From the sequence record KX397371.1: 64,000 nt of DNA, one strand, 5' to 3'. Under the pieces are notes generated by a model. That model worked only from the letters and a program-made list of their open reading frames with translations. It ran no database searches and was not told the origin of the DNA. Every line of letters starts with the position of its first letter. Positions within the stretch are counted from its first letter, which is position 1. Shown piece by piece: positions 3,208 through 24,940 of the stretch. The translations under genes and the position numbers were made by a program.

Positions 3208-4602
3208 ATGGGTCTGTATAGCAAACCCGCACTCGATTTATTGGGGGCGCTCATTAACCGGGACAATCCGGGAGTAAAGACTCAGCTGTCGTCGTCCAAC
3301 ATCCTTGTGCTGGGTGGACCATTCACGACCAGTCTGGGCAACAGTGGCCGCAATACCCGTATCCAACTGAACGGGGTTGTGGGTTCTGGCGTCAACGGAA
3401 AGATGGAGTTTTTCTACGATCGTCTGAACCTGGGAGATTTGTTCAAAAACATCACCATTGTCTTTAACGGTGATAACAAGTCGACGAAACTCAAAGATCT
3501 GCTACCGGCGTTGAATGATCAGTATGGGTTAAACTTGACGGAAGCTGATTTAGCCACGCCTGACACAGCTCTGGATTACGGATATACCGCAACGCCCGTC
3601 ACTTTTACCATGGCAGCGGCGAGTCTGGCGTACCGTGGGAGTTTGACGGCAACGTGGACACGCAAACCGGCCGGGGTTTATCCGAAGTCTGGGCCGGGTA
3701 CAAAAACACTGCTGATGGGGAGTCTGCAAGAAGGCTACTTTGGCGTGGTGTCGAAGGAAGAGATGATGACATCCGGGGAGTTCTACGCGAACTTCTTTGA
3801 TGGCAAAACGGTGAACGGGTCAGGGGTGTTGGTTAACAACACGCTGTTCTGGTTGAAGTTTGCGCTGGATGGAAAGTTTGTCTTTGTCCCGAGCCACAAC
3901 ATGATTTCGAACATCAGCTGGGATACCTTGAACGCGTTTGGTGCGGCGAATGCCGATGCTAAATACCCGATGTTCGTGCAAAAAGACGACGACCAGTTCT
4001 TTTTCCAACTGCGATTACCACGATTCTCCACCACGCTTGAGCTTCCGCCGGATCGTACTGACCCTACTTCGGATGCGAATCGTCTGTTCAACAAGGTGCA
4101 TAAGCAGTCGTACGGTAACGGGGCGTGGGCCGCGTTGACCACCGTGGATATGGCAAACGCCTTTGTCTGGTGGAACAAGCGAAATGATACCTCGGCACCG
4201 TTCCCCGTTTACGTCTCGGCGTTTAACCAAGTCTCGGTAAACAATGCCCCGCCCGCCAGCCCACAAAACTGGCGACCAGTGTTGGAACTGGTCGATGCAG
4301 CTGACTACCTGATGCCGATGCGTAACCTCCAGGCAAAATTGGAAGTACCGGTACGGAACTTTGGGTTTATTCTCACGAGTATCATCGACTCGAGTACGTT
4401 GCAGGCGATGAAAAACATCTCGGCAACACTGGCACGCGGTGTACCGGCACCGGTGTTGTACCGCCCAACGGCGAACATCTTCAAAGCAGCGCAAGACTTC
4501 CGAGCGACGAATCCGGTACGGTCGTTTGCATTCCGGTTCACAGCGACGTACGACAGGCGGACTGATTTAGCCACCACCAATGGCGAACTGAGCGGCTTTT
4601 AA
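3208..4602 (+). CDS. Virion structural protein, type A copy 2
   Basis: MGLY..LI.RDNP..SGRN..FFYDRLNL N-domain, GPGTKTLLMG..GYFG, WRPVLELV, C-terminal DLATTNGELSGF. Confidence 0.7.
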   Translation: MGLYSKPALDLLGALINRDNPGVKTQLSSSNILVLGGPFTTSLGNSGRNTRIQLNGVVGSGVNGKMEFFYDRLNLGDLFKNITIVFNGDNKSTKLKDLLPALNDQYGLNLTEADLATPDTALDYGYTATPVTFTMAAASLAYRGSLTATWTRKPAGVYPKSGPGTKTLLMGSLQEGYFGVVSKEEMMTSGEFYANFFDGKTVNGSGVLVNNTLFWLKFALDGKFVFVPSHNMISNISWDTLNAFGAANADAKYPMFVQKDDDQFFFQLRLPRFSTTLELPPDRTDPTSDANRLFNKVHKQSYGNGAWAALTTVDMANAFVWWNKRNDTSAPFPVYVSAFNQVSVNNAPPASPQNWRPVLELVDAADYLMPMRNLQAKLEVPVRNFGFILTSIIDSSTLQAMKNISATLARGVPAPVLYRPTANIFKAAQDFRATNPVRSFAFRFTATYDRRTDLATTNGELSGF

Positions 4603-4613
4603 AGGATACGATT

Positions 4614-5630
4614 ATGTCATTAAAACTTTCGTGGGCTAACCCGAACACGGCAGCCACCGCGATCCGTATCTATCGTAAAGATACGAACTTTGACTCCAGT
4701 TCCCTTCCCACGCCGCTGGCGGAGATTGGGCCATTGGAAACCAGTTACATCGACACCACGGCGGTCGAAGGCAACAGTTACTACTACGCCATCGGTACCG
4801 TGAGTGCGGTGGACGAGGTCTTTACCGCGACGCAAAAAATCGTTGCCACAGATAACCGTGGTGCGGGCCCAAACGTCTTGCTCGGTGGTGACACCATGCT
4901 TGGGTACTACGGTCAAATGCTGGTTGAAGACTTTGTCAACAACTCCACCATTCTGGCTGCGGCGGCATCGCTTGCGGGGTTGCCAACGGCGTTGGTATCC
5001 CCAAACTGGCACAAGTTTATCCGTAACGGCAAAATCTTGTACTTACCGGACACCAACTTCGGTAATACCGATTACCGCTATCTGTACCAGGCAGGTTTTG
5101 TCCACGGTATTGATGCGAACGGCCCGACAGGCTTCGCGACGACGGGTCTGACACCAACGAAGCAGTTGCGCACTTTTGTGCTGAAAGGCCAGACGTACAA
5201 AATTCGACTGATGCGTGGTTGGAGTGATGGCCCAGAAACGGATATCTCGGCGTACAACGGTGCGGCGGCTAACCACGATAACGTGGCGAATACCAAAGAC
5301 AACGAATTCAACGACTTGGTTTACGCGTTGAATAAGTTCACGCCGTTGAAACAGCGTACCCCGAACTTCCTCAATCTGGAGTGGGATAAGTTTGTCGGTG
5401 CACCAACCACCAACTGGAGCAGCTCAGAAGCCCTGAGTGCCATGATTGCACAGTTCCGCATTGTGACTCAGGAGCGTTGGCCGAACGGCAGTGTGTTATC
5501 CCGCGGTCAGCGTGAAGTGACGTGGGGGCAGTATGCCTCACCACATTCGCGTGCGCATGTGTCGAACATCAGTTCCTCCGGAGTCACGCAAACGCTGATC
5601 TGGTTGCCAGTTATCGAACTCGTGGATTAA
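4614..5630 (+). CDS. Virion structural protein, type B copy 2
   Basis: LSWANPN..IRIYRKD..YYYAI, GAGPNVLLGGD..GYYG, terminal WLPVIELVD. Confidence 0.7.
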   Translation: MSLKLSWANPNTAATAIRIYRKDTNFDSSSLPTPLAEIGPLETSYIDTTAVEGNSYYYAIGTVSAVDEVFTATQKIVATDNRGAGPNVLLGGDTMLGYYGQMLVEDFVNNSTILAAAASLAGLPTALVSPNWHKFIRNGKILYLPDTNFGNTDYRYLYQAGFVHGIDANGPTGFATTGLTPTKQLRTFVLKGQTYKIRLMRGWSDGPETDISAYNGAAANHDNVANTKDNEFNDLVYALNKFTPLKQRTPNFLNLEWDKFVGAPTTNWSSSEALSAMIAQFRIVTQERWPNGSVLSRGQREVTWGQYASPHSRAHVSNISSSGVTQTLIWLPVIELVD

Positions 5631-11777: not shown

Positions 11778-12488
11778 TCAGGCGTTTAACAGTGGAATCT
11801 GCGTAATCGGTTGACTTAACGGCTGCGGTTCCCAAGTGACCGTTACAGCGTTAAATGCACGCTTGATGTTCTGGTAGCGCGCATTCACACAATGGGCGTG
11901 TTTCACATCCCAACGTTCATGCTCAGGAATCGCGTTTTCAATCTGTTCACGGAAGAACAGATAGTTGCGATTGTAGTTCAGCGTGACATCCGAGATTGAC
12001 GGGTAGCTGTACTGATGCGGGTTATCGTTCTTATCGGCATACGACGGCCAGCCGAAGTTCTTCACCGCTTCGTAAAACGAGTTGGCGAGGAATGATTCGA
12101 CCTTCATCATTTCCATAATCCGCAAGAACATCAAATCCGCAAACGGCTTGTCCGTTGCCCGTGACAGATTGCCCGCCGGAGTATCCGGGTAGGGTACTGG
12201 GGACGGGGCTTTCTGATACAGCAGGTCGTGGATACAGGCAGCTGCCGCCCAAGGACCATCAGGGTGCAGAATCGGCTGTAAGGCAGCTGGGATACTCGCC
12301 AAGTCCGTGACGAAGCCCGCGGGGGCGGTGACATACATCAGCGTGTCAGGATGAATACCAGAACGGTACACCATGTCATCCAAACCCGGATGGTCACGGT
12401 ACAATGCCCTCAGCGTAAACGGTACCCGGAAGTCGTCTGTCAGAATGAACCACTGCTTATCTAACACTTTATACTTCAACTCGTTCAT
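11778..12488 (-). CDS. DUF1353-family protein
   Basis: PAGFVTDLASIP..P.GPWAAAACIHDLLY..AD..FL..M is the characteristic DUF1353 pattern. Confidence 0.75.
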   Translation of the reverse strand: MNELKYKVLDKQWFILTDDFRVPFTLRALYRDHPGLDDMVYRSGIHPDTLMYVTAPAGFVTDLASIPAALQPILHPDGPWAAAACIHDLLYQKAPSPVPYPDTPAGNLSRATDKPFADLMFLRIMEMMKVESFLANSFYEAVKNFGWPSYADKNDNPHQYSYPSISDVTLNYNRNYLFFREQIENAIPEHERWDVKHAHCVNARYQNIKRAFNAVTVTWEPQPLSQPITQIPLLNA

Positions 12489-12601
12489 GAAAGTGCCACC
12501 TTAACCATACTGAGCACCACCATGCCTATAATCGACCCCCACAACACATACGCAGGTGGATCATCCTCGGTAAAGAATTTTGTCGGTACAGAATTGTTCA
12601 T
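12485..12601 (-). CDS. 38-aa single-pass membrane protein (not in ORF track; holin-like candidate)
   Basis: Hand translation MNNSVPTKFFTEDDPPAYVLWGSIIGMVVLSMVKVALS*. SD-like aaggg. Its stop overlaps the DUF1353 start (ATGA). Confidence 0.5.
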   Translation of the reverse strand: MNNSVPTKFFTEDDPPAYVLWGSIIGMVVLSMVKVALS

Positions 12602-12620: not shown

Positions 12621-13220
12621 TTATTTAGAACATACCCCTACCTTGATAGCGTAGTCGCCCATTTCACGGTAGACACGGTCATACCAACCGTAAGTGAATT
12701 CTTCGTTCTGTACACGCTTCTCGGAAATCTCGGTGTAGTAAGACACCTGATGGGAAGTGAGCGCGAACATCAAACGGTTGAAGCCATCCGTACCACGGGC
12801 TTTCAGGAAACCTTCCAGCGCAGTCATGGTAGCCGGGCCGATACCGCCGTCGGCAGAGATGTCGGCATACAGTTTACCCTGACGGTTCAACACGTTCAGA
12901 ATACGCTGAAGCGATTTGATGCAGTTTGCACGACCGGCGTTAATGCCGAAGTCGAACATACGGTCAGCCAAGAGTGGATTCCATGCGAGAATACGGTCAA
13001 GGCGCATACGGTCCCACCACCCTTTCTTGTAGATGTCGAGTGCCATCTGACGCGTCAGGTTACGCATGTCGCCGGTGTAGCCGTTTTCACGCGCGGTAGC
13101 TTGTGTGATGCCGAAGTTGGTTGGACCACCCAAGTCATTCGGGTTGTTAACATAACCGGCTTCAATGTTAACTTTGGCCGCAATGATACCTTCCATACTC
13201 CAACGGTCTACAGTTGTCAT
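12621..13220 (-). CDS. Glycoside hydrolase family 108 endolysin with PG-binding-3-like C-terminus
   Basis: EAGYVNNPNDLGGPTNFGIT catalytic motif, FDFGINAG, LQRILN, ADGGIGPAT. ATG at 13220 with SD agagga. Confidence 0.9.
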   Translation of the reverse strand: MTTVDRWSMEGIIAAKVNIEAGYVNNPNDLGGPTNFGITQATARENGYTGDMRNLTRQMALDIYKKGWWDRMRLDRILAWNPLLADRMFDFGINAGRANCIKSLQRILNVLNRQGKLYADISADGGIGPATMTALEGFLKARGTDGFNRLMFALTSHQVSYYTEISEKRVQNEEFTYGWYDRVYREMGDYAIKVGVCSK

Positions 13221-13260
13221 AACATTTCCTCTAATAAAGAACAACAGTCATAACAACCGT

Positions 13261-13301
13261 AAGAAAAAAAAGAAAAGCGACCCACCCCCGAAGGAGTGGG
13301 T
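13261..13301 (-). terminator. Intrinsic terminator (minus strand)
   Basis: Minus strand acccactcc-ttcg-ggggtgggt followed by cgcttttcttttttttctt. Separates the rSAM operon from GH108. Confidence 0.8.
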
Positions 13302-13306
13302 ACGGC

Positions 13307-13963
13307 TTAGGCTACACCATTATCCGCAGCAAGCTGCTTAATCGCGGTGAAGTCTTTTTGTTCCGTGAGGATACGGATGCGTTGTTTCAGCACGGACATG
13401 ACCATGTGCAGGTCATTGTCACGCGTGATAATTTCCGCATAGAGGGCTTTAACGTCCTCCACCGTCCACGGCTCGATAGGCTCGTTGTTCAGCGTCATCC
13501 AGTACATCGGGTCAACCCCGGACTGCATGTAGCTTTGCATCGATTCGCGCGATTTCTCGTCAGCTTGGAACGTCTTGTCGCGGAAGGTAATCGGTGCAAA
13601 CCGTTCCGCGTTATACTTGTCGTTCAGTTTCGGATAAATCGCATTGACTTCCTGATAGAGGTAGTTCTCCGTCGAGGTCAGCGCCGTACGTACTTGGTCT
13701 AAATCAATCTCCAGTACGTCAGCGATGAAGTCTTTGGTTTTCTTCATCAGGAATTCAATTTCAACCGGTGACAGGTCAAAGCCTTTGAGTTTCTCGCGGG
13801 CTTTCTTGTCACTCATACCGTTAATCAGATGGTAATGCAGTAGCAAGCAGAACCCGATACGGTTTTCCATCTGGTCTTGGTATTCTTCTACGTAGTTACC
13901 GTAGCGGTCGATACGCGTGCCCCGTTCGAAATAGCGGGCTTTTATTTCGTCGTTACTAAGCAT
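13307..13963 (-). CDS. DUF4376-like protein (tail-fibre assembly associated)
   Basis: C-terminal ITFRDKTFQADEKSRESM..WMTLNNEPI..DVKALYAEI..LKQRI matches my recollection of the DUF4376 pattern found beside tail-fibre genes. Confidence 0.6.
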   Translation of the reverse strand: MLSNDEIKARYFERGTRIDRYGNYVEEYQDQMENRIGFCLLLHYHLINGMSDKKAREKLKGFDLSPVEIEFLMKKTKDFIADVLEIDLDQVRTALTSTENYLYQEVNAIYPKLNDKYNAERFAPITFRDKTFQADEKSRESMQSYMQSGVDPMYWMTLNNEPIEPWTVEDVKALYAEIITRDNDLHMVMSVLKQRIRILTEQKDFTAIKQLAADNGVA

Positions 13964-14499
13964 CCGGATTCTCCTGCAATCCCAAGGTCAACCAGCAGAC
14001 CGAAGTCAATGAACTGGAAATCGTTTTCCAACTCTTCGCCCCAGAGCAGTTTGGCCTCTTCTGCTTCATCACCCATCTCTTCCAGCGTCTTACGCGCCAC
14101 TTCGAATTCGTGGTAGAACGCATCAGTTAGGTGAGTACCGCGTAATGCACGCACGGTCACACCAGGGAAGTTCAGGGCCAGTCCCACAACGTTGGTTGGG
14201 TCTGCATCACCGGTAGAACGGCGCAGTACCTGCAACTTGTGTTTTGGGAACGCCACCACACGTTTTTCGAAACCGGGATTACGTTTCTCGATTTCGACAA
14301 CGGACTGGTGATCGTCTTCCACGCCCTGTAAAGGTAGGATGACATTCAGGCCATAACGGTTCAACAGACGAATGGTGTCATCGTTGAAATCTTCACCCGG
14401 TACGATCGCATGGATGTTGTACAGCTTGTGTTTGCGAAGGAACGCTTCGACAAGGTGAACGTTACGCCGAGTAAAATTGTGAATCAGCAATGACTTCAT
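13942..14499 (-). CDS. Hypothetical protein in rSAM operon
   Basis: 185-aa ORF with SD ggag, overlapping both neighbours. No motif recognised. Confidence 0.65.
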   Translation of the reverse strand: MKSLLIHNFTRRNVHLVEAFLRKHKLYNIHAIVPGEDFNDDTIRLLNRYGLNVILPLQGVEDDHQSVVEIEKRNPGFEKRVVAFPKHKLQVLRRSTGDADPTNVVGLALNFPGVTVRALRGTHLTDAFYHEFEVARKTLEEMGDEAEEAKLLWGEELENDFQFIDFGLLVDLGIAGESGCLVTTK

Positions 14500-15808
14500 T
14501 CGAGACTCCGAGTTCTAATTTAAGTTTATCCGCTTTCATGCGATCACGCACGCAGCTCGCACAGTAGCACAAGGTCTTATCGTGCAGGTCTGCGACATTC
14601 GTGGTACCGGTTTTCTGATACCAGTATTCGGACACCAACAGTTTCGCGGTTGTCCAACCACACTGGCGACGCTCAGCATGGTACTCTTTACGCGCTTCCA
14701 GCTCACCATCGCCGTTCTCGTAAGAAGCAGCTGCACAGCTACCGCACGAGTGTTTCATCGGGCAGCCTAAGCAGGTAGACGGGTAGTTGGTATACTGCGT
14801 CTGGATTTCGTTCAGGAGTTTGTGACCGTCAATGTTCACAATCTCACGCCCGCGCAGTTCTGCTACCGCTGAACGGGTAGTTACGGTTGACATGAAACGG
14901 TTACAGCCGTAGATCTTACGGTCGAAGCCGAGACAGGTCATGTGGGTCAGCGTACCGCAGTAAGGACGTACGCGGTCTGGGTGCAGACGGGTTGCTTCAT
15001 CGTCCAGCAACTTCTGACGCCAGTCCGGGTCCCATGTCGCCATGAAATCCAACCCATCAGGAATGATGTGGGTCAGGATATTACGTGGTGACTTGTGGTA
15101 GCCGTTGTCGACCCAGTAATCGATAACGTCAATCATCTGGTTTGCAATACCCAGAGCCATATCACGCGACAGAATGTCTTCGTACGTGACGTTACCGGAG
15201 ATGGTACCACCGCCCGTTTCTTTAATCAGGTGAATCATGCTCTCGCCGTAACGAGGCAGGGTCTCACCGGTAAAGGTGGCTTTGATACCGAGTTCTGCAA
15301 TACCGACAGATTTCAGGTATTGGTAGCCGCGCATCGCCTGCTCGTACGAGCCTTCACGCGAAGTGGTGAAGATACGATAGCGGTCGTGTACTTCTGGCAG
15401 ACCATCGATGGACACACCAATCGACAGACGGTCTTTCCAGCGTTCAATGATTTCTTTGCTGATAGGACGGTCGAACAAGGTGCCGTTGGTAGAAATAGAG
15501 AATACGTACTGGCGGTTGTCGCGCGCCGCTAACTCTTCGGCTGTCTCAAAGACGGCTTTCAGAATCTTCGGCTGCATAAACGGCTCACCCCCGATGATGT
15601 CGATAATGATTTCGGCATCTTCGATGTGACGGTCGCGGTCAAAACACGCATGAATAAAATCGACAGCGTCATCCACTTTGTTGTTGCGCGGATACTTACG
15701 TTCGTAGCAATACGAACAGTCGAGATTACAAGACAGGTTAGTTACGACCTGATACGTGAGTGTGGGGCGCTGTTTACGCGTCTGCGATGAAGATCGTTCT
15801 TCACTCAT
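14462..15808 (-). CDS. Radical SAM/SPASM peptide maturase
   Basis: CNLDCSYC (CxxxCxxC), GGEP, STNGT, SIDG..HD..R. SPASM cysteines YCG..GCNRF..CLGCPMKHSCGSC..QC, plus an extra CYCASC near the C-terminus. Confidence 0.92.
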   Translation of the reverse strand: MSEERSSSQTRKQRPTLTYQVVTNLSCNLDCSYCYERKYPRNNKVDDAVDFIHACFDRDRHIEDAEIIIDIIGGEPFMQPKILKAVFETAEELAARDNRQYVFSISTNGTLFDRPISKEIIERWKDRLSIGVSIDGLPEVHDRYRIFTTSREGSYEQAMRGYQYLKSVGIAELGIKATFTGETLPRYGESMIHLIKETGGGTISGNVTYEDILSRDMALGIANQMIDVIDYWVDNGYHKSPRNILTHIIPDGLDFMATWDPDWRQKLLDDEATRLHPDRVRPYCGTLTHMTCLGFDRKIYGCNRFMSTVTTRSAVAELRGREIVNIDGHKLLNEIQTQYTNYPSTCLGCPMKHSCGSCAAASYENGDGELEARKEYHAERRQCGWTTAKLLVSEYWYQKTGTTNVADLHDKTLCYCASCVRDRMKADKLKLELGVSNEVIADSQFYSA

Positions 15809-16698
15809 TTGATTACCTCATTGCGATGTTTGCGAGCGTGGATCGTGCGATTGATGTAACGGTAGGCTTCTTGCCCAATGACTTTCGCCAGCATGTTACA
15901 ACCGCTATCGATTTCCATCTCGACATCCATCGTGTAGCCGATAGACGCATCGGAGTCCAGACGAACCAGACCGCTGCACGCGTTGCACGACTGCTCAAAG
16001 AACTTGCTGATGGAGAACCCAGTTGAGCCATTGTTCATGACATTCAGGCGTTCAATCTGGTCTTCCATTTTGTTGTAGCCGAACATGAAGTTCATCACCA
16101 AATCTTGGTTCAGAGGTTTCTTCATGCGGTTGTCCAACAGCAGCGTCATGTCTTTGAAGCCGTAGTGGTGGAGTGCGCGGTGTAAGTCCAGCAGGTCAGT
16201 GTGCCAATATTTATCAGCCAACTGCTCACGAGTCACCACGGCCCACGTATGGACGTTGTTCAGCGCAGCCATCACTTCGAAGGCTTCGAATGCACCATCT
16301 TCAACGACACGCCAGAGCGGACGTTCGCTCTTTTTGTATCCATCGAACGACACACAGATACGGTTAAACTGTTGCAGCATCGGGAGATGTTCCAGACGCA
16401 TTTTCAGACCGTTCGTGTACAGCTCGTGAGTGAGATGCGGGTATCGGGCTTTGACTTCGGCCAGCAATGGCTCAATCTTGCGGGTTGCCATTAACGGCTC
16501 ACCACCCGTCCAGTTCATCCCTTGTAAAGTCGGGTACTTCTCCAGTTGTTCAAACAGCGCTTCACGCTGAATTTCCCGACCAACATCTTTTGTGTCCATG
16601 TAATACGCTCCGCCGCAGAAACTACAATCCAAATTACACTTGGACGTCGTCACTATCGACAGCTCGGTAGGGGGACGTATTTGTGGTGCATCGGTCAT
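15805..16698 (-). CDS. Second radical SAM enzyme (short, possibly Twitch-like C-terminus)
   Basis: CNLDCSFC, TGGEPL, YTNG, VSFDG and C-terminal CNAC..GC. ATGA overlap with the SPASM gene. Confidence 0.88.
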   Translation of the reverse strand: MTDAPQIRPPTELSIVTTSKCNLDCSFCGGAYYMDTKDVGREIQREALFEQLEKYPTLQGMNWTGGEPLMATRKIEPLLAEVKARYPHLTHELYTNGLKMRLEHLPMLQQFNRICVSFDGYKKSERPLWRVVEDGAFEAFEVMAALNNVHTWAVVTREQLADKYWHTDLLDLHRALHHYGFKDMTLLLDNRMKKPLNQDLVMNFMFGYNKMEDQIERLNVMNNGSTGFSISKFFEQSCNACSGLVRLDSDASIGYTMDVEMEIDSGCNMLAKVIGQEAYRYINRTIHARKHRNEVIK

Positions 16699-16716
16699 TG
16701 CAGATTGCTCCAGTTT

Positions 16717-17595
16717 TTAATAGATCGCGAAAAGGGGGTCGTCCTCAAACTTCGCGCCCACATCCAGAAGGAAATCGGAGTGGTAGGCATCGAGTATTTG
16801 ATTCAGAACAGCCTGACGGTCGTTAATCCGTTTAAGATCATCGAGTGTCACGCTTCGCGACTTGATGTTTGAAACTGCCTTTTCTTCGTCAGCTGTTAAG
16901 GAAACCTTCGACAGAAGGAAACTTACCAGCTTGCTCAGGTCAGCCTCGGTACCCGGTGCTTCACCGTAACGCAATTGAACCAAGAACTGCATCCACGGTT
17001 TGCGGATACGGCGACTGATTTCATGCGGGTCGGTAATCGCTTCGAACTGCCCATCTACCGCATTCCAGCGAAACTTGTAGCTGTACGCCAGCAAGTCAGC
17101 CAAGCAATGGATACCGAGCGTTTCATAACCTAAGATGTGATGGTATTTTTCCACACCTTTATATTCTTCCGTGCCGGTCGGTACTAAGGTGTACCAGAAC
17201 GGGTTGGATGACGGATAGTCCCAGCTCCATTCGCGACGAACCATGGGAATGACATCCAAATCCGCAAACGGCGTGAAGATCATTTCCAAATCCATCGAGT
17301 GGTTCAGGACTGCATCAGTAAAGAAATACTTACCGTCAATCAGTCGGCCACTGGCGTTCAGCTCGCTTTCATTAAACTTCACATGCTGAACAGTGTGCTT
17401 ACCGATGGAGTAGGTATTCTCTTCGGTGTACTGCTTACGTGTAATATCCCGCCCACGTACCTTAGGCCATTCGCCTGGCAGCATCGAGATAAGGCGTACT
17501 TCGTCAGCGATGTGTGCTTTCACACTGTCGTACGACGAAATGTGTAACGGGAAATTTTGCGTCGTGCGGTACGCCAAATGGAGGTCGTTCTTCAT
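16717..17595 (-). CDS. Hypothetical protein between precursor peptides and rSAMs
   Basis: 292-aa ORF with SD aagga and 18-nt spacers on both sides. No motif recognised. Confidence 0.7.
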   Translation of the reverse strand: MKNDLHLAYRTTQNFPLHISSYDSVKAHIADEVRLISMLPGEWPKVRGRDITRKQYTEENTYSIGKHTVQHVKFNESELNASGRLIDGKYFFTDAVLNHSMDLEMIFTPFADLDVIPMVRREWSWDYPSSNPFWYTLVPTGTEEYKGVEKYHHILGYETLGIHCLADLLAYSYKFRWNAVDGQFEAITDPHEISRRIRKPWMQFLVQLRYGEAPGTEADLSKLVSFLLSKVSLTADEEKAVSNIKSRSVTLDDLKRINDRQAVLNQILDAYHSDFLLDVGAKFEDDPLFAIY

Positions 17596-17613
17596 GGTTT
17601 CTTTATCCTTACT

Positions 17614-17823
17614 TTATCGGTTACCCGCGCCGTAACTGCACCCGCCACTGCACGACCAGCTACAGCTACCGTTGCAGTTATAATGCGAGAGTGGAAGCCC
17701 AGCAAGGTTGTTGGTCGAACTGACCGTGCCGCGTGTGGCGATATAGTTATTGGCCTGTGCGGTCGTGATGTAGCCTTCGACGTTCTGCACCCGATCGCGA
17801 ATGTTTTTCAATGAGATTGCCAT
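17614..17823 (-). CDS. Cys-rich precursor peptide P3 (4 Cys, CxxxC)
   Basis: Leader MAISLKNIRDRVQNVE, core CNGSCSWSCSGGC, SD gagga. Confidence 0.8.
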   Translation of the reverse strand: MAISLKNIRDRVQNVEGYITTAQANNYIATRGTVSSTNNLAGLPLSHYNCNGSCSWSCSGGCSYGAGNR

Positions 17824-17844
17824 AGGTCCTCACTCGATAGATTT

Positions 17845-18237
17845 CTATCGACTGCCTGAACAGCCAGAGCATCCCGTACAACTTGAACTACAGGAACCGG
17901 AACAGTTACCGGAGCATGTACCCGAACAACCGGAGCACCCACCCGAACATGAACCAGAACATCCTGAGCACCCACTGGTACACCCAGCAGTACAGCTCGA
18001 CGAACATGAGGAACCGCAGCCCCCTGATGCCGAACCGGAACAGCCACCTGAACAGCTAGAGCAACCCCAGCTACAGGTTCCGCCGCAATCGTAATGAACA
18101 CGTCCTTGGCCGCCGAATAAGTCGACGTTATTGGTTGCCTTACCACGAATGTAGGTTTGTACCCCACCTTCCGTTTTTAAGGAGTTCGCTTCGATCACTG
18201 CAATGCGATCCGCGAGGTTTCGTAAGTTGATAGCCAT
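17845..18237 (-). CDS. Cys-rich precursor peptide P2 (20 Cys, CxxxC repeat)
   Basis: Leader MAINLRNLADRIAVIE, Gly/Ser/Cys core starting DCGGTCSWGC, SD ggag. Confidence 0.85.
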   Translation of the reverse strand: MAINLRNLADRIAVIEANSLKTEGGVQTYIRGKATNNVDLFGGQGRVHYDCGGTCSWGCSSCSGGCSGSASGGCGSSCSSSCTAGCTSGCSGCSGSCSGGCSGCSGTCSGNCSGSCSSSCTGCSGCSGSR

Positions 18238-18246
18238 TGTTTCTCC

Positions 18247-18636
18247 CTACTGTGGACCAGAGCAACCAGAGCAACCGGTGCAGCTGGAAGAACACGACCC
18301 GGCGCAACCACCGCCACACTTACCACTGCACGAAGACGCACAGGTACCTGAGCAACCTGAACAACCCGAACACCCACCGCCGCAGTTAGAAGAACAGCTA
18401 CCCACGCACGTAGAAGTACAAGTCCCTGCGCAGCTGGTACAGCTTGCAGAACACCCGTTAGAACACGACCAGCTACAACTACCGCCACAATCCAGACGGG
18501 AGGGAGACCACCCACTGAACGAGTCCGCAGCGTTGTAAGCTTTCGATGCTACCTGCCCGTCTACACGAGGCCCGGTAGCATAGTTTGCTTCCACATTGTT
18601 AACGCGGTCGCGTATGTTTTTCATTGAAATCGCCAT
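18247..18636 (-). CDS. Cys-rich precursor peptide P1 (21 Cys, CxxxC repeat)
   Basis: Leader MAISMKNIRDRVNNVE, core starting DCGGSCSWSC, SD aagga. Confidence 0.85.
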   Translation of the reverse strand: MAISMKNIRDRVNNVEANYATGPRVDGQVASKAYNAADSFSGWSPSRLDCGGSCSWSCSNGCSASCTSCAGTCTSTCVGSCSSNCGGGCSGCSGCSGTCASSCSGKCGGGCAGSCSSSCTGCSGCSGPQ

Positions 18637-18652
18637 ACGTTTCCTTTGTCAA

Positions 18653-18690
18653 TAAAAAAATGAGGACGCTGCCATAATGACAGCACCTCA
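18653..18690 (-). terminator. Intrinsic terminator between the 401-aa fibre gene and P1
   Basis: Minus strand tgaggtgctgtca-tta-tggcagcgtcctca (GU pairs, one bulge) followed by ttttttta. Confidence 0.7.
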
Positions 18691-18701
18691 TGTATTAAGT
18701 G

Positions 18702-19901
18702 TTATCGTGAACCCGCCTCGGCCTGTACGTCGTCGCGAGAAGTCAGGCTGCTGTTGACGTGTACTGCCGCCTGAACCACACCGCCGTACTGCTTGTGGAG
18801 ATAGTTCGGGTGTGGGTTATCTGCGTTAACGTGGTTCTGGAGATTCTGCGACAGGGTGTTAATGGAGTTCTGCAATCCAGCAACTTGCTGTTTCAGTGCA
18901 TTCAGCTGACCAGAGAGATCCTGAATCTGCTGCTGCGTATCGGAACCGGCGGATTCCAAATCACTGATGCGCTGCTTGAGCCCATTGATGACTTGGTTCT
19001 GGTCATTGATCATCTTCTGGAGTTGTAACACCAGAGAGTTCAGGTCGGCCTGTTGTAACGCCGCCTTTTGGTAGTTCAATGCCACCGAATTCAGTTGGTC
19101 ATTCCACGAACCGAGTGCACTGACCACCGCATCGATACGCGCACCGAGTGCTGTGTCCGCTGCTTTCAAATTACCGATGTCAGCGAGGACAGCGTTAATG
19201 GCAGTCTGAACCGTTTGAATCAGCGCGCGAATTTCGGTTTCAGTGAGACCGTTCGCCTGATGAATATCCAGTGCGTGAACATTACCTTTGGCATCGATGT
19301 GCGATTGTAGCGCCGCCATCATCTGGGTTTGCATGTCAGACATGGCTGCCAGAATCTGCTGGAGCTGAACTTCGTTACCGGAGTTAATCGCATCGGTCAT
19401 CAACGCGAGTTGCGTAATGATGTATTCGAAACCAAACAGGTCGCCGAGGTCTTTAAAGGCCGGAGCCGCTGCAAAGGTATCCGGGACATTACGCAGGTCA
19501 GCGAAGTCAACTTTGCGGTCTTCAAGGTTGGCATCAGCCAACGCCTGTTTAATCGCAGAGATAACCGCCGACTGTGGACCACCGACGACCTGTGCAAGAC
19601 AGACGATATCGGTTGGGATAGCCGGGTTAGTGACGACCACACCCATACAGATTTCGCGGTTCTTAGCAAGCTTCATGTACGCCGGATGGATGTAAATCAG
19701 CTCGTAGTCGGTACCGCGTTTATAAATGGTGTTGGGTTGATTGGCAGGCCGCATACGGAACGTGTCCGCATAGAACGGCCCTGCTGGGAAAGCGAACGCA
19801 CGGTTGACCTTCCCCCCACCTAACACAACCGGGACATTGACCGCGTTACTGGACGCAGCCCCTGTCAGGTCAAGTGGGTATTGAAATAGAATATCTGGCA
19901 T
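18702..19901 (-). CDS. Short tail-fibre-like virion protein with long coiled coil
   Basis: ATG at 19901 with SD gggag. N-domain YPLDLTG..GPFY..RGTDYEL is shared with the three large fibre genes. Heptad-rich Q/L region with RISDLE, then HVNADNPHPNY fibre motif. Confidence 0.7.
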   Translation of the reverse strand: MPDILFQYPLDLTGAASSNAVNVPVVLGGGKVNRAFAFPAGPFYADTFRMRPANQPNTIYKRGTDYELIYIHPAYMKLAKNREICMGVVVTNPAIPTDIVCLAQVVGGPQSAVISAIKQALADANLEDRKVDFADLRNVPDTFAAAPAFKDLGDLFGFEYIITQLALMTDAINSGNEVQLQQILAAMSDMQTQMMAALQSHIDAKGNVHALDIHQANGLTETEIRALIQTVQTAINAVLADIGNLKAADTALGARIDAVVSALGSWNDQLNSVALNYQKAALQQADLNSLVLQLQKMINDQNQVINGLKQRISDLESAGSDTQQQIQDLSGQLNALKQQVAGLQNSINTLSQNLQNHVNADNPHPNYLHKQYGGVVQAAVHVNSSLTSRDDVQAEAGSR

Positions 19902-19948
19902 GGCCAAACTCCCTTAGTGAGACGTCCTTGTCTCGACGTGTTAGATGG

Positions 19949-22900
19949 TTACGGCAACTTAGGCATAAGATTGACCGTCAGTTTTGACGGGGTGACCGTT
20001 CCGCCGTAATAGTTGACCCCGTTGCCGATGTACAACGCGTTGTCGGCAATAAGCATGGGAATCGGTTGGCGGAAGATGACATCTCCATGAACAATCGGGA
20101 AATAATCATCGATGGAAACACCTGCTGGCATGGCGACTTTATAAACATCAAGTACGCCACCAGTGATGCGCCCCGCTGCGCCCTGTACGTTCGTTGTGGC
20201 ACGAATGGCCACGGTAGCAGCATCGGAGATATAGAACACCGTCGCTGTGCCGTTATCCACGTTAGAGACACTAAACGCAGCGAACGCGGTGGCTTGACCC
20301 CCGGTGATACCATTAAACACGAATGTGTTTTTGACCCCCACCTCGGCAGCAAGTGTGGCCTCAGCCAGCGTAGAAGAAAACGTTGCAGAAACATCGAGGT
20401 TGGCGTTGGTACATCCGATGGTGCCGGAGCCCAAAGAGTAACCGCTTGTCAATTTGATTTTCACCGTCGGGGTCGACGGGGTAATCTCCACAATCATTTT
20501 CCACGCAATCGAGATGACAGCCGACATCCCCGGAATACCCACCAAATACCCATTATCTACATCAGAAGCCTGACCAAAGTTGGCACCCTTCATCGTGAAC
20601 TTCTTGTAGTCTTTAGGTAAGGTGCTCGCCACCACATCCCGCAGTAACTCGATGGGAACCTTGTGGTTTTGTGACGCGAAGACCGGGCCGATTTGCGACA
20701 CATCCAGATACCCATCGCCGGTAGCCGCCGGAGCAGAAAGGGGTTGCTTACGCAATAGCCCCAGTCGAGAAAGGCGCGCTTCACTGTCCACATTCACATC
20801 GTGGCTGTAGACCGTGTCGGTGTGTTCCGTCAACTGTTTCAATTCACCCAAGCGTTTCACTTTCGTGAACTCAGACGACAAGATACGCTGACTGTCGGTG
20901 ACTACCGTCCCGATAAACAACCGGGTATCTGTATCGGGCATTTTCTGCGTCAACAGCTGGTATTCCGGTTTGCCGTTCACCACCGCAGCATGCATGTAGA
21001 ACGTACGGTTTTGGTACGCACCGGGGAACAACGTTTTGATGTTCCCGTTATACGCATCCAACGTGTAATAGTCGGAGCCAAAGCGTAAGCTCTCAGACTC
21101 GGTGATGTACAGCTCCCACCCTTCTGCGGTTTTTACCCCAGCAACGATTGCAACATTCCCCGCAGGGGTGTAGTTTGTCACCCCTGCCGCAACAAAGTCG
21201 TTCGGTGGTGCGCTTGGGCCTGCGAAATAAGAAGGTGAAATCACCTGCCCGTTTGACCGCAGCATTCGCTCCCCAACAAACGAAAGGATGGTAGCATAGT
21301 TGTAAAACGTGCTGCCGTGCACCCCCGCCTTCGTCGCCGACAGCTTACCTCCGTTCAAACTGAAAATCAGCTCAAGGTGGTACGCCGCGGATGACCCCAC
21401 GACCTGTCGAATCATGAAGTTCGGCAAGTGCATGATGCCCGTTCCGTCACCTTTCTCGTAGAAGATTGGTTGGCCCATTCTGCTGCTGTGCCCAGAATAG
21501 TTGGTATTCTGAATGAGTTGCAGGTTGCTGTACGTCGCGATGTTGGTGTATACAACGTCAGCTGTGGTCGTGACCAGCTGAACAACCCCGTTCACGACGC
21601 TCGGGTAGATTTGGAACGTAACATTCCCTAACCGCTTATTGCCGTTATAGAGTGCGTAGTACGACATCTGTGCAATCCAAATCGGATTGGCATCAAGGGG
21701 TCGAATCGCCCACACGGAAAAGAGGAGGTTAATCGGGTTGGCAATGCTGTCCGCCACCTCACCTGCCGGTGCTGCCGCTTTTAAGGCCGCCGTTATCTTG
21801 TTCCATGTGTCGGAGGACAACGTAAGGGTATCGGCTTTTGGTACCGCACCCACGGCCTGGTACCGCTTCACACCGGGACCGTTCCAATACGCGCCGTTTA
21901 ACTTACCCGACTGGAGCGTGGATGTCGCACACCACGTCATGTCTGCCAAAGCGTAGTAATCGTCAACCGGGAAATTGCGGCGCACGTTACTCGGGCCTGC
22001 GCCCAAGTACGCGGGACCGTATGTTGTGTTTGGGTCTACCTCGACATACACCGCGCTGTTGGCGTTGGCGGGACTAAACAGATACGCATTATTGCCCAGA
22101 TACACCGGATGGGATTGACCGACAGAATACACCGAGCCAATACCGCCCGTGAACTGCCAGTTCGCCAGAGAGGTGTAACCGCTTTTGTGGTCTCCTGCGA
22201 TAAAGTCGTAGAAGTCCGCGTCCATTGTCGAGTGTGCTAACCCGTTGGGGAGGGTGTCCTGAGACTGATCGTAAATAGACCATGCGCGTTGGCCAACCCC
22301 TTGGAACACCCGCATGCGGTTATCAGCATTGCCGTACGGGAACCGAACTTTCCAGCCTGCCTCTTTGAGCTTTGTCCCAGTGGCGAGATACACATCGTCC
22401 GCATCGATTTTGAATGGGAAGATGTCTGCATTATCCAGCGAGACCGTCAACGTATCCATGTCAATCTGGAACGAGGTCGCCCAAGTGAAACGGCCATACG
22501 AGTCATCAGGGCTCAACAATAACAGGGTGCTCAAAATACCTACCCTGGTCATGTTCTCGCGCTGCGCTACCGCATACGTCGCGATGTTGTGTGCGATGTT
22601 GCGCAGGTTACCCCAGCGTACTTTACCGGCCTCGGTCACATAGGTGGTGCCCTGTGTCGCAGGGTCGGTCGCATCGGTGTCTGTGTTAGCGCGCAGCAAC
22701 ACTGAGATACCGTTGACGCTGTTCCCCCCTTTGAGAGCAGCAGGGGTGTAAACCATCTTGTCCCCACTGACTGACCCTACTAACGCATAGACACTGTACT
22801 GGGTATTGGTCAATTCCAGATGAAGAATGTAGACTTTCCCTTTATACACGATGGTTTGTTCGCGTGTCTGATCGCCGAGATAGCCGCTGACCGTGCCGTT

Positions 22901-24940
22901 CGCGTCGAACGAGGCAGGGAATTCACTCCGATACACCTGTTTGTGTTTGGTGTAGTTCAGTGTTCCTTCCAGCATGACTGTGTAGAAATATCCGTCGCTG
23001 CCTAAACAGACAAGCGCCGCATCGCCTGACGCAACCAGTGTGAGTAGCCGGACACCGGGATACTTACTCATTCCCGCTGGGTGGTATGGGAACGACGTCT
23101 GCTGCTCCCCTACAATTGACCCATCGTTGTTTACACGGGCATAGCCGTAGTAAATGCGATCAGTGTTCGGCAATCCGTCGTTTGCATTGCGTAACAGGTA
23201 AACGATGTCCCCTTCCTGCTTGACTGCCCCCAACCCTTTCCAGCTTAGCTGTTTCGCAAAACCGGCAAAATTCCCCACCGTTGGAATAGGCAGGAACCCA
23301 CTGTTACCGTACGAGGCACCCCCAGTCGTCCACGACGGCAACAGACCGTCCAACACGTCTTTGTACGTATTAAGGCGCTGTTGTACGTTATAGCCCTGCT
23401 TTGACGTCACCACTTTGTTCGTGGTGGTATCAATCGCATCCCACAGTTGCAACAGACCTGCGTCCGTATCAGACGCCGTTGGTACGCCCGTCAGGTCGGC
23501 AAACGTGTGCGTGTGGTTTTCCAGAGCCTTATTTGCCAATACCGCACGAATGGCGTTGGTCAACGGTTTCTCAGCAGGTGCGGTGTTGTTGATGTTACCC
23601 ACACCCAAATCGGCGGACGTTAAGGTAAGGGACTGTTTCGTACCGTCATCAATGAACTTCTTCCCGTTAATGGTGTACGTGTTGTCCACGTAATCATCCA
23701 GCGTCTTTTTCAGGACGTTAACAGCATACTGCGAAATCGCGGTACCCGAAGAAATATTTGCAGACAGGTTGGTGATAGCAAACAGCCCCGGTACTTTGTC
23801 AGTTGCCGTGGGCAGTTGCGCGTTCATGGTCAGTGGAGAAGACTGCTTCGCTGTACCGAATACCTTGATGGTGTCGGTTGGAGAAAAGTAAGCGTTCCCC
23901 GGTAAGAGTTTTACTTCGGACAGGTACAACGAGACCATGTCCGGTGTGACCAGATATGCACCGTTAAAGATGGGTGCCACTGCGCCGTTGAGCACATAAG
24001 CCGTGTTCAGCCCCGAACCCAACTCAACCCCCACACCCCGTTCGTTACTGTCCGCATCCGCAGTGATGTTGATAGCACGGGTGGTGGTAATAAGGAACTT
24101 ATCGCCTTGCAGGGTGATAACATGGCTCGAGTCGGCGGTACGGAATGTCAACGCACCGTTATTCAGCACCTTGAGGCGACCACGCAGTTCACCAAGCACC
24201 ACAGGCATCAGGGTATCGATGTGAGCTTGCTGTATGCCGTTTGCTTTCATGATAGCGACTAACTCATCCAGCGTTTTACCGAATGCCTTCGTCGAGTCTA
24301 CCGCTTTGGTCAGTACCTTTAACGCCCCAATCTCATCCGCAGTGTATTGGTGTGCGTTTTTGATACGATGGTGGCTGTACAGGTTGTCGTCGAAAATCTT
24401 TTTACCGTTGGCAAAAATCAAATCGGTGACCTCGGCGTACGCCACATCCATATCGCCTGCCCGCTTAATCAAACCTTGACGGATATCATCCAGCGCTTTC
24501 ACGACTTCATCGCGGAGCAGGGCTTCATCTAAGTTGGCAGGTGGGTCAATTGCAGGAACCACTGGTGCATAACGCATCAGTTCAGACCAGTCGGTGTTAC
24601 GCGGGTCTTTGATGTCCTCTTTCACCAAGAACTTGCCAATCTCGGTCTGTGGTACGCGGTATTCGCGACCAATCGAATAGATCGTGTAGTCAACAGAGGT
24701 GTCTCCGTTAATCAACATAATCCCGCCGTAGATTTGGTCTTTCATTGCGACAGCGGCTTCTTTATAATAGTAGCCGAGGTAGTAATCCAGACCCTCAATG
24801 AGCTTCACGCCTGCGCTGTTTTTCAGCTCAAGCCCGGTACGGAAGAACGGCCCCTCAGGAGGGATGACCACATTGTATTTGTTCGGATATGTGGTCGTCA
24901 GTAGCGTACCGGTAAATTTGGCTACGTTCGTGCTCGCCAT
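19949..24940 (-). CDS. Large tail-fibre-like virion protein (1663 aa)
   Basis: N-domain GPFF..L..GLDYYL, fibre-shaft motifs (DLGVGNINNTA, HTHTFADL, ASDTDAGLLQL), beta-rich C-terminal part. Confidence 0.7.
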   Translation of the reverse strand: MASTNVAKFTGTLLTTTYPNKYNVVIPPEGPFFRTGLELKNSAGVKLIEGLDYYLGYYYKEAAVAMKDQIYGGIMLINGDTSVDYTIYSIGREYRVPQTEIGKFLVKEDIKDPRNTDWSELMRYAPVVPAIDPPANLDEALLRDEVVKALDDIRQGLIKRAGDMDVAYAEVTDLIFANGKKIFDDNLYSHHRIKNAHQYTADEIGALKVLTKAVDSTKAFGKTLDELVAIMKANGIQQAHIDTLMPVVLGELRGRLKVLNNGALTFRTADSSHVITLQGDKFLITTTRAINITADADSNERGVGVELGSGLNTAYVLNGAVAPIFNGAYLVTPDMVSLYLSEVKLLPGNAYFSPTDTIKVFGTAKQSSPLTMNAQLPTATDKVPGLFAITNLSANISSGTAISQYAVNVLKKTLDDYVDNTYTINGKKFIDDGTKQSLTLTSADLGVGNINNTAPAEKPLTNAIRAVLANKALENHTHTFADLTGVPTASDTDAGLLQLWDAIDTTTNKVVTSKQGYNVQQRLNTYKDVLDGLLPSWTTGGASYGNSGFLPIPTVGNFAGFAKQLSWKGLGAVKQEGDIVYLLRNANDGLPNTDRIYYGYARVNNDGSIVGEQQTSFPYHPAGMSKYPGVRLLTLVASGDAALVCLGSDGYFYTVMLEGTLNYTKHKQVYRSEFPASFDANGTVSGYLGDQTREQTIVYKGKVYILHLELTNTQYSVYALVGSVSGDKMVYTPAALKGGNSVNGISVLLRANTDTDATDPATQGTTYVTEAGKVRWGNLRNIAHNIATYAVAQRENMTRVGILSTLLLLSPDDSYGRFTWATSFQIDMDTLTVSLDNADIFPFKIDADDVYLATGTKLKEAGWKVRFPYGNADNRMRVFQGVGQRAWSIYDQSQDTLPNGLAHSTMDADFYDFIAGDHKSGYTSLANWQFTGGIGSVYSVGQSHPVYLGNNAYLFSPANANSAVYVEVDPNTTYGPAYLGAGPSNVRRNFPVDDYYALADMTWCATSTLQSGKLNGAYWNGPGVKRYQAVGAVPKADTLTLSSDTWNKITAALKAAAPAGEVADSIANPINLLFSVWAIRPLDANPIWIAQMSYYALYNGNKRLGNVTFQIYPSVVNGVVQLVTTTADVVYTNIATYSNLQLIQNTNYSGHSSRMGQPIFYEKGDGTGIMHLPNFMIRQVVGSSAAYHLELIFSLNGGKLSATKAGVHGSTFYNYATILSFVGERMLRSNGQVISPSYFAGPSAPPNDFVAAGVTNYTPAGNVAIVAGVKTAEGWELYITESESLRFGSDYYTLDAYNGNIKTLFPGAYQNRTFYMHAAVVNGKPEYQLLTQKMPDTDTRLFIGTVVTDSQRILSSEFTKVKRLGELKQLTEHTDTVYSHDVNVDSEARLSRLGLLRKQPLSAPAATGDGYLDVSQIGPVFASQNHKVPIELLRDVVASTLPKDYKKFTMKGANFGQASDVDNGYLVGIPGMSAVISIAWKMIVEITPSTPTVKIKLTSGYSLGSGTIGCTNANLDVSATFSSTLAEATLAAEVGVKNTFVFNGITGGQATAFAAFSVSNVDNGTATVFYISDAATVAIRATTNVQGAAGRITGGVLDVYKVAMPAGVSIDDYFPIVHGDVIFRQPIPMLIADNALYIGNGVNYYGGTVTPSKLTVNLMPKLP

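Follow-up and report, generated by a model that had tools for sequence, protein, structure and literature searches.

Why does a jumbo phage carry a pair of radical S-adenosylmethionine (rSAM) enzymes and three small cysteine-rich proteins among its tail fiber genes? The question is raised by Erwinia phage vB_EamM_Parshik (KX397371), an SPN3US-like jumbo phage in the genus Machinavirus that infects Erwinia amylovora and has a 241-kb genome. We analyzed a 64,000-nucleotide (nt) stretch of its genome (here called the window), in which the genes concerned form an operon at positions 13307-18636 (record positions 137307-142636), a region 100% identical to the Parshik record. The answer that we favor, at somewhat better than an even chance, is that SPN3US-like phages have in this operon their own version of a conserved phage cassette for the posttranslational maturation of a Cys-rich distal fiber module. 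The initial annotation had described three Cys-rich peptides (with 21, 20, and 4 Cys), a 292-amino-acid (aa) protein, two rSAM enzymes, a 185-aa protein, and a DUF4376 gene, and all of these open reading frames (ORFs), eight on the minus strand, are present between 13307 and 18636. In order from the upstream end, the operon and its boundaries are as follows.

18665-18687, minus strand: upstream terminator-like hairpin and T-run with a 10-pair stem, between fiber gene gp179 and pepA; upstream boundary of the operon
18247-18636, minus strand: pepA, 129 aa with 21 Cys; not annotated in GenBank; phrog_6085 (8e-49)
17845-18237, minus strand: pepB, 130 aa with 20 Cys; GenBank gp177
17614-17823, minus strand: pepC, 69 aa with 4 Cys; GenBank gp176; phrog_6085 (3.7e-29)
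16717-17595, minus strand: g292 (gp175), 292 aa; phrog_8030; sits where a tail fiber chaperone gene usually sits
15805-16698, minus strand: rSAM2 (gp174), 297 aa; Pfam PF04055, 44.8 bits (cutoff 29.5)
14462-15808, minus strand: rSAM1, an rSAM/SPASM protein (gp173), 448 aa; Pfam PF04055, 56.5 bits (cutoff 29.5)
13942-14499, minus strand: g185 (gp172), 185 aa, alpha/beta; phrog_7988; SPN3US-like loci only
13307-13963, minus strand: DUF4376 protein (gp171), 218 aa; PF14301, 39.9 bits (cutoff 25), 6.5e-10; phrog_8169
13280-13301, minus strand: downstream terminator-like hairpin and T-run; downstream boundary of the operon

The three Cys-rich proteins share one design. In PepA, 49 N-terminal aa without Cys are followed by 80 aa of CXXX repeats, with Cys at about every fourth residue; the N-terminal parts of the peptides (49-50 aa) are conserved and Cys-free, and the three paralogues share a two-heptad helix whose positions 5, 8, 12, and 15 are hydrophobic. 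PepC has the same helix and the same junction motif as PepA and PepB, followed by a single short repeat block. The repeat parts are composed almost wholly of Ser, Gly, Cys, Thr, Ala, and Asn, with Cys accounting for ~26% of core residues in a small-residue context, and successive Cys are spaced by 3 or 4, except for one gap of 8 in PepB. The cores contain no Lys or Arg, both of which do occur within the first 45 residues. Within the core units, the +1 residue is Ser or Thr in 78% and the +2 residue is Gly or Ser in 81%. The pepA-pepB-pepC order is kept in all 10 SPN3US-like phages that we read closely (among them phiEaH2, CR5, SPN3US, Kwan, Phobos, Caitlin, pEa_SNUABM_6, and pEa_SNUABM_29), and three IMG/VR contigs also carry pepA and pepB. 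Among the orthologues read, the Cys count is 21 in every PepA and 20-23 in PepB; PepC has four, with only two or three in Derbicus- and Wellington-type phages, the two-Cys variants retaining only the first C-x-G-x-C-S-W unit. These are real genes under strong purifying selection: the ratios of nonsynonymous to synonymous substitution rates (dN/dS) relative to pEa_SNUABM_6 are 0.056 for pepA, 0.020 for pepB, and 0.028 for pepC (dS 0.5-0.9), and PepA and PepB keep every Cys in comparisons as distant as CR5, even though 7-13 Cys codons switch between TGC and TGT.

The Cys-rich genes are nonetheless called on the wrong strand or in the wrong frame in most GenBank records of SPN3US-like phages. The Parshik record omits pepA and annotates gp178 (18203-18538, plus strand, 111 aa, rich in Pro, Glu, and Gln); because the selection signal sits on the opposite strand, we reject gp178 as a gene and regard it as a mirror-strand ORF over pepA and pepB. 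In the SPN3US record, gp166 is a wrong-frame ORF over pepB, and both pepA and pepC are missing, such that this systematic annotation error includes the model phage of the group. The corrected ORFs of SPN3US (JN641803) are at 4130-4522, 4533-4937, and 4953-5159 of locus L004. Mirror-strand Pro/Glu/Gln-rich or wrong-frame calls of this kind are found at L004 (4606-4941), L011 (2138-2638 and 2696-2959), and L005 (4224-4553 and 4608-4985). Published virion proteomes could not have detected PepA, PepB, or PepC, because their ORFs were absent from the annotations searched.

The nature of these proteins is suggested by their longer relatives. A full HMMER search with PepB against 1.84 billion representatives (E≤1e-3) identified 50 relatives, 36 of which span the junction and 16 of which are of free-standing size; in 20 of the 50 (~40%), the match is a C-terminal module preceded by at least 50 extra N-terminal residues. 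All ten of the long relatives that were scanned carry phrog_6085 in their C-terminal half, and four of the ten have tail fiber or collar fiber N-termini, one at 3.7e-31; proteins with a phrog_6085 C-terminus and a tail fiber PHROG N-terminus are P0195, P0199, P0202, P0212, and the fiber at locus L021. By BLASTP, PepB matches the fibers of loci L009 (4e-9) and L006 (5e-5), and in the latter match, which covers PepB residues 10-66, the aligned part of the prophage fiber comprises the shaft ahead of the repeats and the first repeats. Because the match begins at model position 5-7 in several long relatives, the N-terminal helix of the peptides corresponds there to an internal shaft segment. In at least five independent lineages, the module together with ~20-40 leader-like residues forms the C-terminus of proteins that occupy the side tail fiber position or have a tail fiber N-terminus, and the fused fibers and the window peptides have a common junction (N-A-x-x-L-x-G-Q, 4-5 residues, then Y-x-C-x-(G)-x-C-S-W-S/T-C). 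Judged by these sequence comparisons, PepA, PepB, and PepC are homologous, including the 20-40 residues that precede the Cys array, to the C-terminal ends of tail fiber proteins in lambda-like, P2-like, other myovirus-type, and jumbo phages.

The enzymes lead to the same place. Searches with rSAM1 returned, besides SPN3US-like phages at ≥50% identity, a more distant group at 31-39%, made up of lambda-like, P2-like, other myovirus-type, and jumbo phages and prophages, in tail module contexts. The recurring core is a CXXX-tailed fiber, a g292-like protein, a short rSAM, and an rSAM/SPASM protein. In a Deferribacter prophage (L006), a GpJ-like tail gene is followed by genes for proteins of 302 aa and 250 aa and for rSAMs of 263 aa and 392 aa. 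The order in a Campylobacter P2-like prophage (L007/8/19) is baseplate J and tail protein I, then a Phage_tail_fib protein of 384 aa and a protein of 250 aa, and then two rSAMs, DUF1353, and the sheath; a 213-kb phage contig encodes a 568-aa protein (with the precomputed Pfam assignment 'tSAM_targ_Cxxx_rpt') and then two rSAMs. When translated, the fiber proteins of all three end in a CXXX array. At L018 and L020, the cassette directly follows the central tail fiber J gene (E ~1e-150), and at L021 it lies between baseplate/fiber genes and the tail sheath. In local jackhmmer searches, g292-like proteins occur in exactly the loci with fiber-type junctions (L006, L007/8/19, L018, L020, and L021). 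By BLASTP, g292 matches the 250-aa Deferribacter prophage protein (6e-12) and does not match the partner proteins of L007 (Campylobacter) or L009; jackhmmer recovered the Campylobacter protein and not that of L009. The same local searches confine g185, the DUF4376 protein, and the fiber gene product gp179 to SPN3US-like phages, which refines the eight-gene system of the initial annotation: the peptides, g292, and the two rSAMs recur elsewhere, and g185 and the DUF4376 protein are SPN3US-like only.

That peptides and enzymes form one system is borne out by a broader survey of gene neighborhoods. Scanning IMG/VR with an rSAM1 profile gave 80 loci, for a total of 85 with five found earlier, and we scored the presence of a CXXX ORF, defined by at least five consecutive Cys at a spacing of 3-4 and located no more than 6 kb from the rSAM1 relative. 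Such an ORF is present at 71 of the 85 phage or prophage loci, compared with four or five of 80 distant bacterial rSAM/SPASM loci, where three of the ORFs are short Clostridia peptides. The background loci came from a genome-contig scan with the rSAM1 profile and are mostly generic rSAM/SPASM maturases with 22-36% partial identity.

In Parshik itself, the operon lies directly downstream of two fiber genes, which places it in the tail fiber module, as had been claimed.

18702-19907, minus strand: gp179, coiled-coil virion protein; orthologue of SPN3US tail protein gp167 and of phiKZ gp134
19949-24940, minus strand: gp180, 1663 aa; orthologue of SPN3US gp168

SPN3US gp168 has been named a tail fiber protein and is a paralogue of phiKZ gp131 (PMC5105663, PMC7411985, PMC13250141), and both gp167 and gp168 are in tailed but not in tailless SPN3US particles (PMC5105663, PMC7411985). 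In phiKZ, the gp131-135 paralogues build twelve hetero-hexameric peripheral fibers (PMC13250141). The SPN3US virion spectral-count table lists the tail proteins gp167-171 and does not list gp161-165, which are the DUF4376 protein (gp161), g185, both rSAMs, and g292; since they are not in the virion spectra, these five fit maturation or assembly factors. A literature search found no further virion proteome, and the paper on pSal-SNUABM-04 contains no proteomics. No homology was found between gp179 and the fused L009 fiber, and there is thus no support for the idea that a gp179-CXXX fusion was simply split.

Both enzymes have the hallmarks of rSAM proteins in their cysteine patterns. In rSAM1, the CxxxCxxC motif is at residues 27-34 (C27/C31/C34), and all 27 relatives in alignment A2 keep it together with a pattern of eight SPASM Cys; C284, C302, C346, C349, C355, C358, and C383 are invariant, and C292 is present in ≥90% of the 27. 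The C-terminal pattern includes the C-x2-C-x5-C-x2-C arrangement of the SPASM subfamily, and all of the top NCBIfam matches are SPASM maturases, although no Pfam SPASM match is reported. The solved structures nearest to rSAM1 by sequence are CteB (5wgg, 1.9e-12) and anSME (4k37, 3.4e-4), and because the alignment begins at CteB residue 104, rSAM1 lacks the N-terminal RiPP recognition element (RRE) domain, where RiPP denotes a ribosomally synthesized and posttranslationally modified peptide. In rSAM2, the CxxxCxxC motif is at 21-28 (C21/C25/C28), accompanied by a GGEPL motif, and the C-terminal region has two invariant Cys and one nearly invariant Cys (alignment A4), a pattern consistent with a single twitch-like auxiliary site. 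The best NCBIfam matches of rSAM2 are TIGR04084, PapB, a twitch-domain rSAM, and HxsC (2.9e-8), all below cutoff.

We propose more generally, with a little less than even confidence, that many tailed phages of siphovirus, myovirus, and jumbo types build a poly-cross-linked Cys ladder at their fiber ends by RiPP-type rSAM chemistry, that in SPN3US-like phages the ladder is split into three small subunits that dock on the peripheral fibers, and that the ladder, in place of an ordinary folded domain, would be the host contact or stabilizing part. Late in infection, PepA, PepB, and PepC would be made beside the peripheral fiber proteins, and g292 would bind the conserved junction and present the unfolded Cys tail to the enzymes. 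We suggest this presenting role for g292 because its gene has the position of a chaperone gene, because rSAM1 lacks a recognition domain, and because HxsC needs its partner HxsD, a pairing that is a precedent for a separate substrate-presenting partner (PMC13128918). rSAM1 would then join the ~20 Cys thiols to carbons of neighboring Ser, Thr, or Gly residues, which would yield a ladder of small thioether rings within the molecule, and the twitch-like rSAM2 would add a second type of modification, possibly at the invariant C-x-G-x-C-S-W block. The product would be a covalently stiffened rod, insensitive to redox conditions and to proteases; such a thioether rod could be made in the cytoplasm, whose reducing conditions preclude disulfides, and would not be reducible afterwards. 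In most lineages, the rod would stay on the fiber as its tip, and in Parshik it would be delivered as three separate subunits that either join the gp179/gp180 fiber complex or trimerize via the shared N-terminal helix. We place g185 and the DUF4376 protein outside the core, as likely lineage-specific helpers. Cys-to-Asp/Glu chemistry of the PapB or QhpD type is excluded, as there are no Asp or Glu acceptors in the cores.

Several observations weigh against this proposal. Asp and Glu, the acceptors that PapB and QhpD use, are absent from the cores of all three peptides. The initial annotation had directed attention to TIGR04114 and TIGR04115, and TIGR04115 is indeed the best NCBIfam match of rSAM1 (126.6 bits, 1.5e-36), with the adjoining CXXX gene that the family calls for present threefold, 0.9-2.8 kb upstream in the same operon; however, the score is below the curated cutoff of 350, and that against the PapB family NF047865 (125 bits, 3.6e-36, residues 20-232) is below its cutoff of 340. 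Further matches to HxsB (3.7e-23), the QhpD-type family TIGR03906 (3.5e-18), SCIFF, and other peptide maturases are likewise subthreshold. The peptides fare similarly: they have no Pfam or NCBIfam match at E≤0.01, and at E≤10 only subthreshold ones to TIGR04114 (PepA 8.7 bits and PepB 11.5 bits; cutoff 20) and TIGR04118 (PepC 12.8 bits, E 0.09; cutoff 35), although the L009 fiber just reaches TIGR04114 (20.7 versus 20 bits). The predicted structure of g292 has no recognizable RRE or chaperone fold, and the SPN3US virion spectra are uninformative on PepA, PepB, and PepC, whose ORFs were unannotated or misannotated in the databases used; we infer both their cross-linking and their virion location. 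The CXXX family also has nonfiber members, because the Clostridia peptides look like ordinary RiPP precursors with short leaders. Finally, the Cys domain of the fused fibers might be cleaved off after assembly, like the C-terminal chaperone domains of some fibers.

In some explanations, the Cys-rich proteins are not fiber tips. One is a classical RiPP pathway, in which the rSAMs modify the core, the ~49-aa leader is cut off by a host or other protease, and the Cys-rich peptide set free then works outside the virion, for example on the host envelope, against competing phages or bacteria, or as a metal chelator at lysis. The architecture is RiPP-like, with a conserved Cys-free N-terminal part and a repetitive core encoded in an operon with modifying enzymes, and with three paralogues that have a common N-terminus; moreover, the top enzyme matches are RiPP maturase families, PepC has its weak likeness to TIGR04118, described as an 'rSAM-modified Cys-rich RiPP', the Clostridia short CXXX peptides adjoin rSAM/SPASM genes, and lysis genes lie immediately downstream of the operon. 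Nevertheless, the peptidase and transporter of a typical RiPP cluster are not there: neither these nor an immunity domain is found in the eight operon proteins by Pfam, NCBIfam, and PHROG scans or in the predicted folds of g292 and g185, in agreement with the initial annotation. The would-be leader is homologous to a fiber shaft segment and is internal in the 20 extended relatives, and the operon sits among late structural fiber genes. Length and Cys number are constant across distant phages, as would be expected of a structural unit more than of a bioactive peptide undergoing diversification. We therefore regard a classical RiPP pathway as unlikely and consider PepA, PepB, and PepC to be better described as free-standing fiber tip modules than as leader-core precursors; the earlier suggestion that they are fiber tip components and not secreted RiPPs gains support both from the fiber-fused relatives and from the missing protease and exporter.

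Other explanations accept the fiber connection and differ in what becomes of the cysteines or of the proteins. The CXXX arrays could stay as free thiolates that bind metal or an Fe-S cluster in a trimeric fiber, the rSAMs making a few local modifications or loading the metal. Cores with ~26% Cys among small residues do resemble metallothionein-like ligand arrays, the two-Cys PepC variants with their one remaining C-x-G-x-C-S-W unit would fit a single local site, and paired rSAMs in the HXS system install one site-specific modification on a repeat protein (PMC13128918). We nonetheless find such a metal- or cluster-bearing tip quite unlikely, as the closest characterized relatives of rSAM1 use up Cys thiols in thioethers, and free thiol arrays on an extracellular particle would oxidize. 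In addition, CXXX proteins accompany rSAM/SPASM genes irrespective of repeat number at the 71 of 85 loci, which suggests that the repeats themselves are the substrate. Alternatively, the Cys-rich proteins or domains could be transient, acting as a chaperone or scaffold for the gp179/gp180 fibers before being discarded or cleaved. C-terminal chaperone domains that are removed after trimerization are known in other fibers and spikes; furthermore, g292, g185, and the DUF4376 protein are nonvirion proteins in SPN3US, and DUF4376 and DUF1353 'tail assembly' genes are nearby. However, a chaperone that requires two radical enzymes and ~20 conserved Cys would be without precedent, scans of the fused fibers revealed no autoproteolytic domain such as Peptidase_S74, and many short fibers end with this module and would have no distal domain without it; a discarded assembly factor is thus very unlikely in our estimation.

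The proposed cross-linked fiber tip has partial counterparts among known systems. TIGR04114 and TIGR04115 (and also TIGR04117, TIGR04118, and a Pfam family) likewise describe substrates with Cys at every fourth residue beside an rSAM/SPASM enzyme; these families are computationally defined, and we found no experimental characterization of the TIGR04114/04115-type ones. The phage cassette differs in adding a second rSAM and a g292-type partner, the window proteins being subthreshold relatives, and in that its substrate is a fiber module with a conserved junction and not a short stand-alone peptide. PapB is an rSAM/SPASM enzyme without an N-terminal RRE that acts repeatedly on C-x3 units to give a row of small thioether rings, joining Cys to Asp or Glu. 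Like it, rSAM1 is RRE-less and is paired with a C-x3 repeat substrate, but the C-x3-D/E unit of the PapB substrate freyrasin is not found, the substrates here are three to four times longer and fiber linked, and no transporter or protease was found. CteB, which makes a thioether on a Cys-rich peptide, and anSME have the three-cluster SPASM architecture in common with rSAM1; the ~100-residue N-terminal RRE of CteB is missing in rSAM1, and the CteB substrate SCIFF is a free peptide with six Cys. QhpD is an rSAM/SPASM enzyme (TIGR03906 being its family match here) that installs several intramolecular Cys thioethers, with Asp or Glu acceptors, in the small structural subunit QhpC, which is kept in a complex; there, however, the product is a periplasmic enzyme subunit with no repeats and no phage context. 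Among fibers, the tip of the T4 long fiber protein gp37 is metal stabilized, with His-x-His iron sites. The fiber chaperones and the gp37 tip also provide examples of a gene just after the fiber being needed for the distal end and of a tip stabilized beyond ordinary folding; the helpers here differ in including two radical enzymes, and the stabilization that we propose is covalent.

In the HXS system (HxsA-D), two rSAMs and a small partner mature a repeat-bearing protein and not a small secreted peptide (PMC13128918). HXS differs in being a bacterial antiphage defense with H-x-S repeats, one +8 Da modification, and a periplasmic product (PMC13128918). Membership of the Parshik operon in HXS can be rejected, with scores of 82 bits versus 370 for TIGR03978 and 32.9 versus 267.9 for TIGR03977, and with operon proteins that are without H-x-S repeats.

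Fiber tips determine which bacteria are recognized and must survive outside the cell. We know of no described fiber with enzymatic cross-links of the kind proposed, and our full-text literature search found nothing linking tail fibers to radical SAM enzymes and nothing on CXXX-repeat targets, in keeping with the earlier statement that there is no characterized example. The tie to tail fibers across phage morphotypes, the four-gene cassette with its second rSAM and g292-type partner, and the split three-subunit form appear to be new. If the proposal is correct, then RiPP-type enzymes would count virion proteins among their substrates, in a new class of enzymatic virion maturation. It would also explain how a covalently stabilized domain, comparable to a disulfide-rich one, is made in a reducing cytoplasm. 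The CXXX-repeat rSAM target families, which are defined by computation, would acquire a function in biology, one that seems to play out largely in phages.

The accessory proteins are harder to place. The AlphaFold2 (AF2) models of g292 and g185 are of good quality (pLDDT 87.6 and 89.2, respectively). For g292, Foldseek found nothing in the PDB at E≤1e-3 and only its own orthologue in BFVD, and searching PDB sequences with it yielded nothing above noise; g292 is thus predicted from its model to have a new fold. A fold search with g185 also gave no match at E≤1e-3, with weak likenesses to short-chain dehydrogenases/reductases (SDR), TIM barrels, and rSAM cores (SuiB and QueE); neither a peptidase nor a flavodoxin-like reductant is supported for it. 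Because there is no significant fold match, the roles that we suggest for g292 and g185 derive from gene position and co-occurrence only. The DUF4376 protein weakly resembles phrog_1807, 'tail fiber protein' (2e-4), and is possibly an assembly factor. We note that in several records of Salmonella SPFM phages (proteins P0084, P0099, P0104, P0166-P0170, and P0189-P0191), the ORFs called for the relatives of rSAM1, g292, and g185 match the window proteins over only a small part of their length.

The operon is compact and well delimited. From pepA to rSAM2, the gaps are 9, 21, 18, and 18 nt, a Shine-Dalgarno-like purine run precedes each gene, and the last four genes (rSAM2, rSAM1, g185, and the DUF4376 gene) overlap successively by 4, 38, and 22 nt, as the initial annotation had noticed. 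It had also placed terminators at both ends, and these are strongly predicted: the upstream hairpin (-19.0 kcal/mol, z -5.6) and the downstream one (-18.1 kcal/mol, z -4.3) are each more stable than any of 200 shuffled sequences (0/200 fold as well). The upstream hairpin ends ~25 nt ahead of the pepA start codon (18636-18665). A promoter scan found no sigma-70-type promoter between this hairpin and pepA, and transcription of the operon probably depends either on read-through from the fiber genes or on a phage-specific promoter outside the scan model.

Directly past the downstream terminator is a lysis pair, and beyond it a putative tail assembly gene.

12621-13244, minus strand: endolysin with GH108 and PG_binding_3 domains, the first member of the lysis pair
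12485-12601, minus strand: 38-aa hydrophobic ORF, the second member of the pair
11778-12488, minus strand: DUF1353 'tail assembly-like' gene; PF07087, 2.3e-16; phrog_1158

In phiEaH2 and Kwan, the lysis pair differs from this arrangement in its location or in its strand relative to the cassette. The DUF1353 gene is 0.8 kb downstream of the operon, and the rSAM pair of the Campylobacter P2-like prophage is also directly followed by DUF1353 (L007, 8068-8433); this recurrence might be meaningful, or might merely reflect the synteny of tail modules.

CXXX proteins beside rSAM/SPASM genes also take other forms. Short peptides of 58-65 aa adjoin rSAM/SPASM genes in Bacillota/Clostridia (L096, 8751-8927; L097, 8464-8661; L114, 1098-1292). 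Other classes occur in phage contigs, many of them from one large metagenome (L054, 2627-5110; L066, 2633-5995; L088, 2191-5973; L091, 1591-3438; L072, 1460-3667; and also L022 and L039). They include proteins of 816-829 aa that combine a CXXX region at the N-terminus with an ALK/LTK glycine-rich domain (PF12810, 2e-96), proteins of >1000 aa with C-Q-T-x or C-E-T-x repeats, one protein of 615 aa with 131 Cys and another of 735 aa with 151 Cys, and pairs of proteins of 168-176 aa and 48-265 aa.

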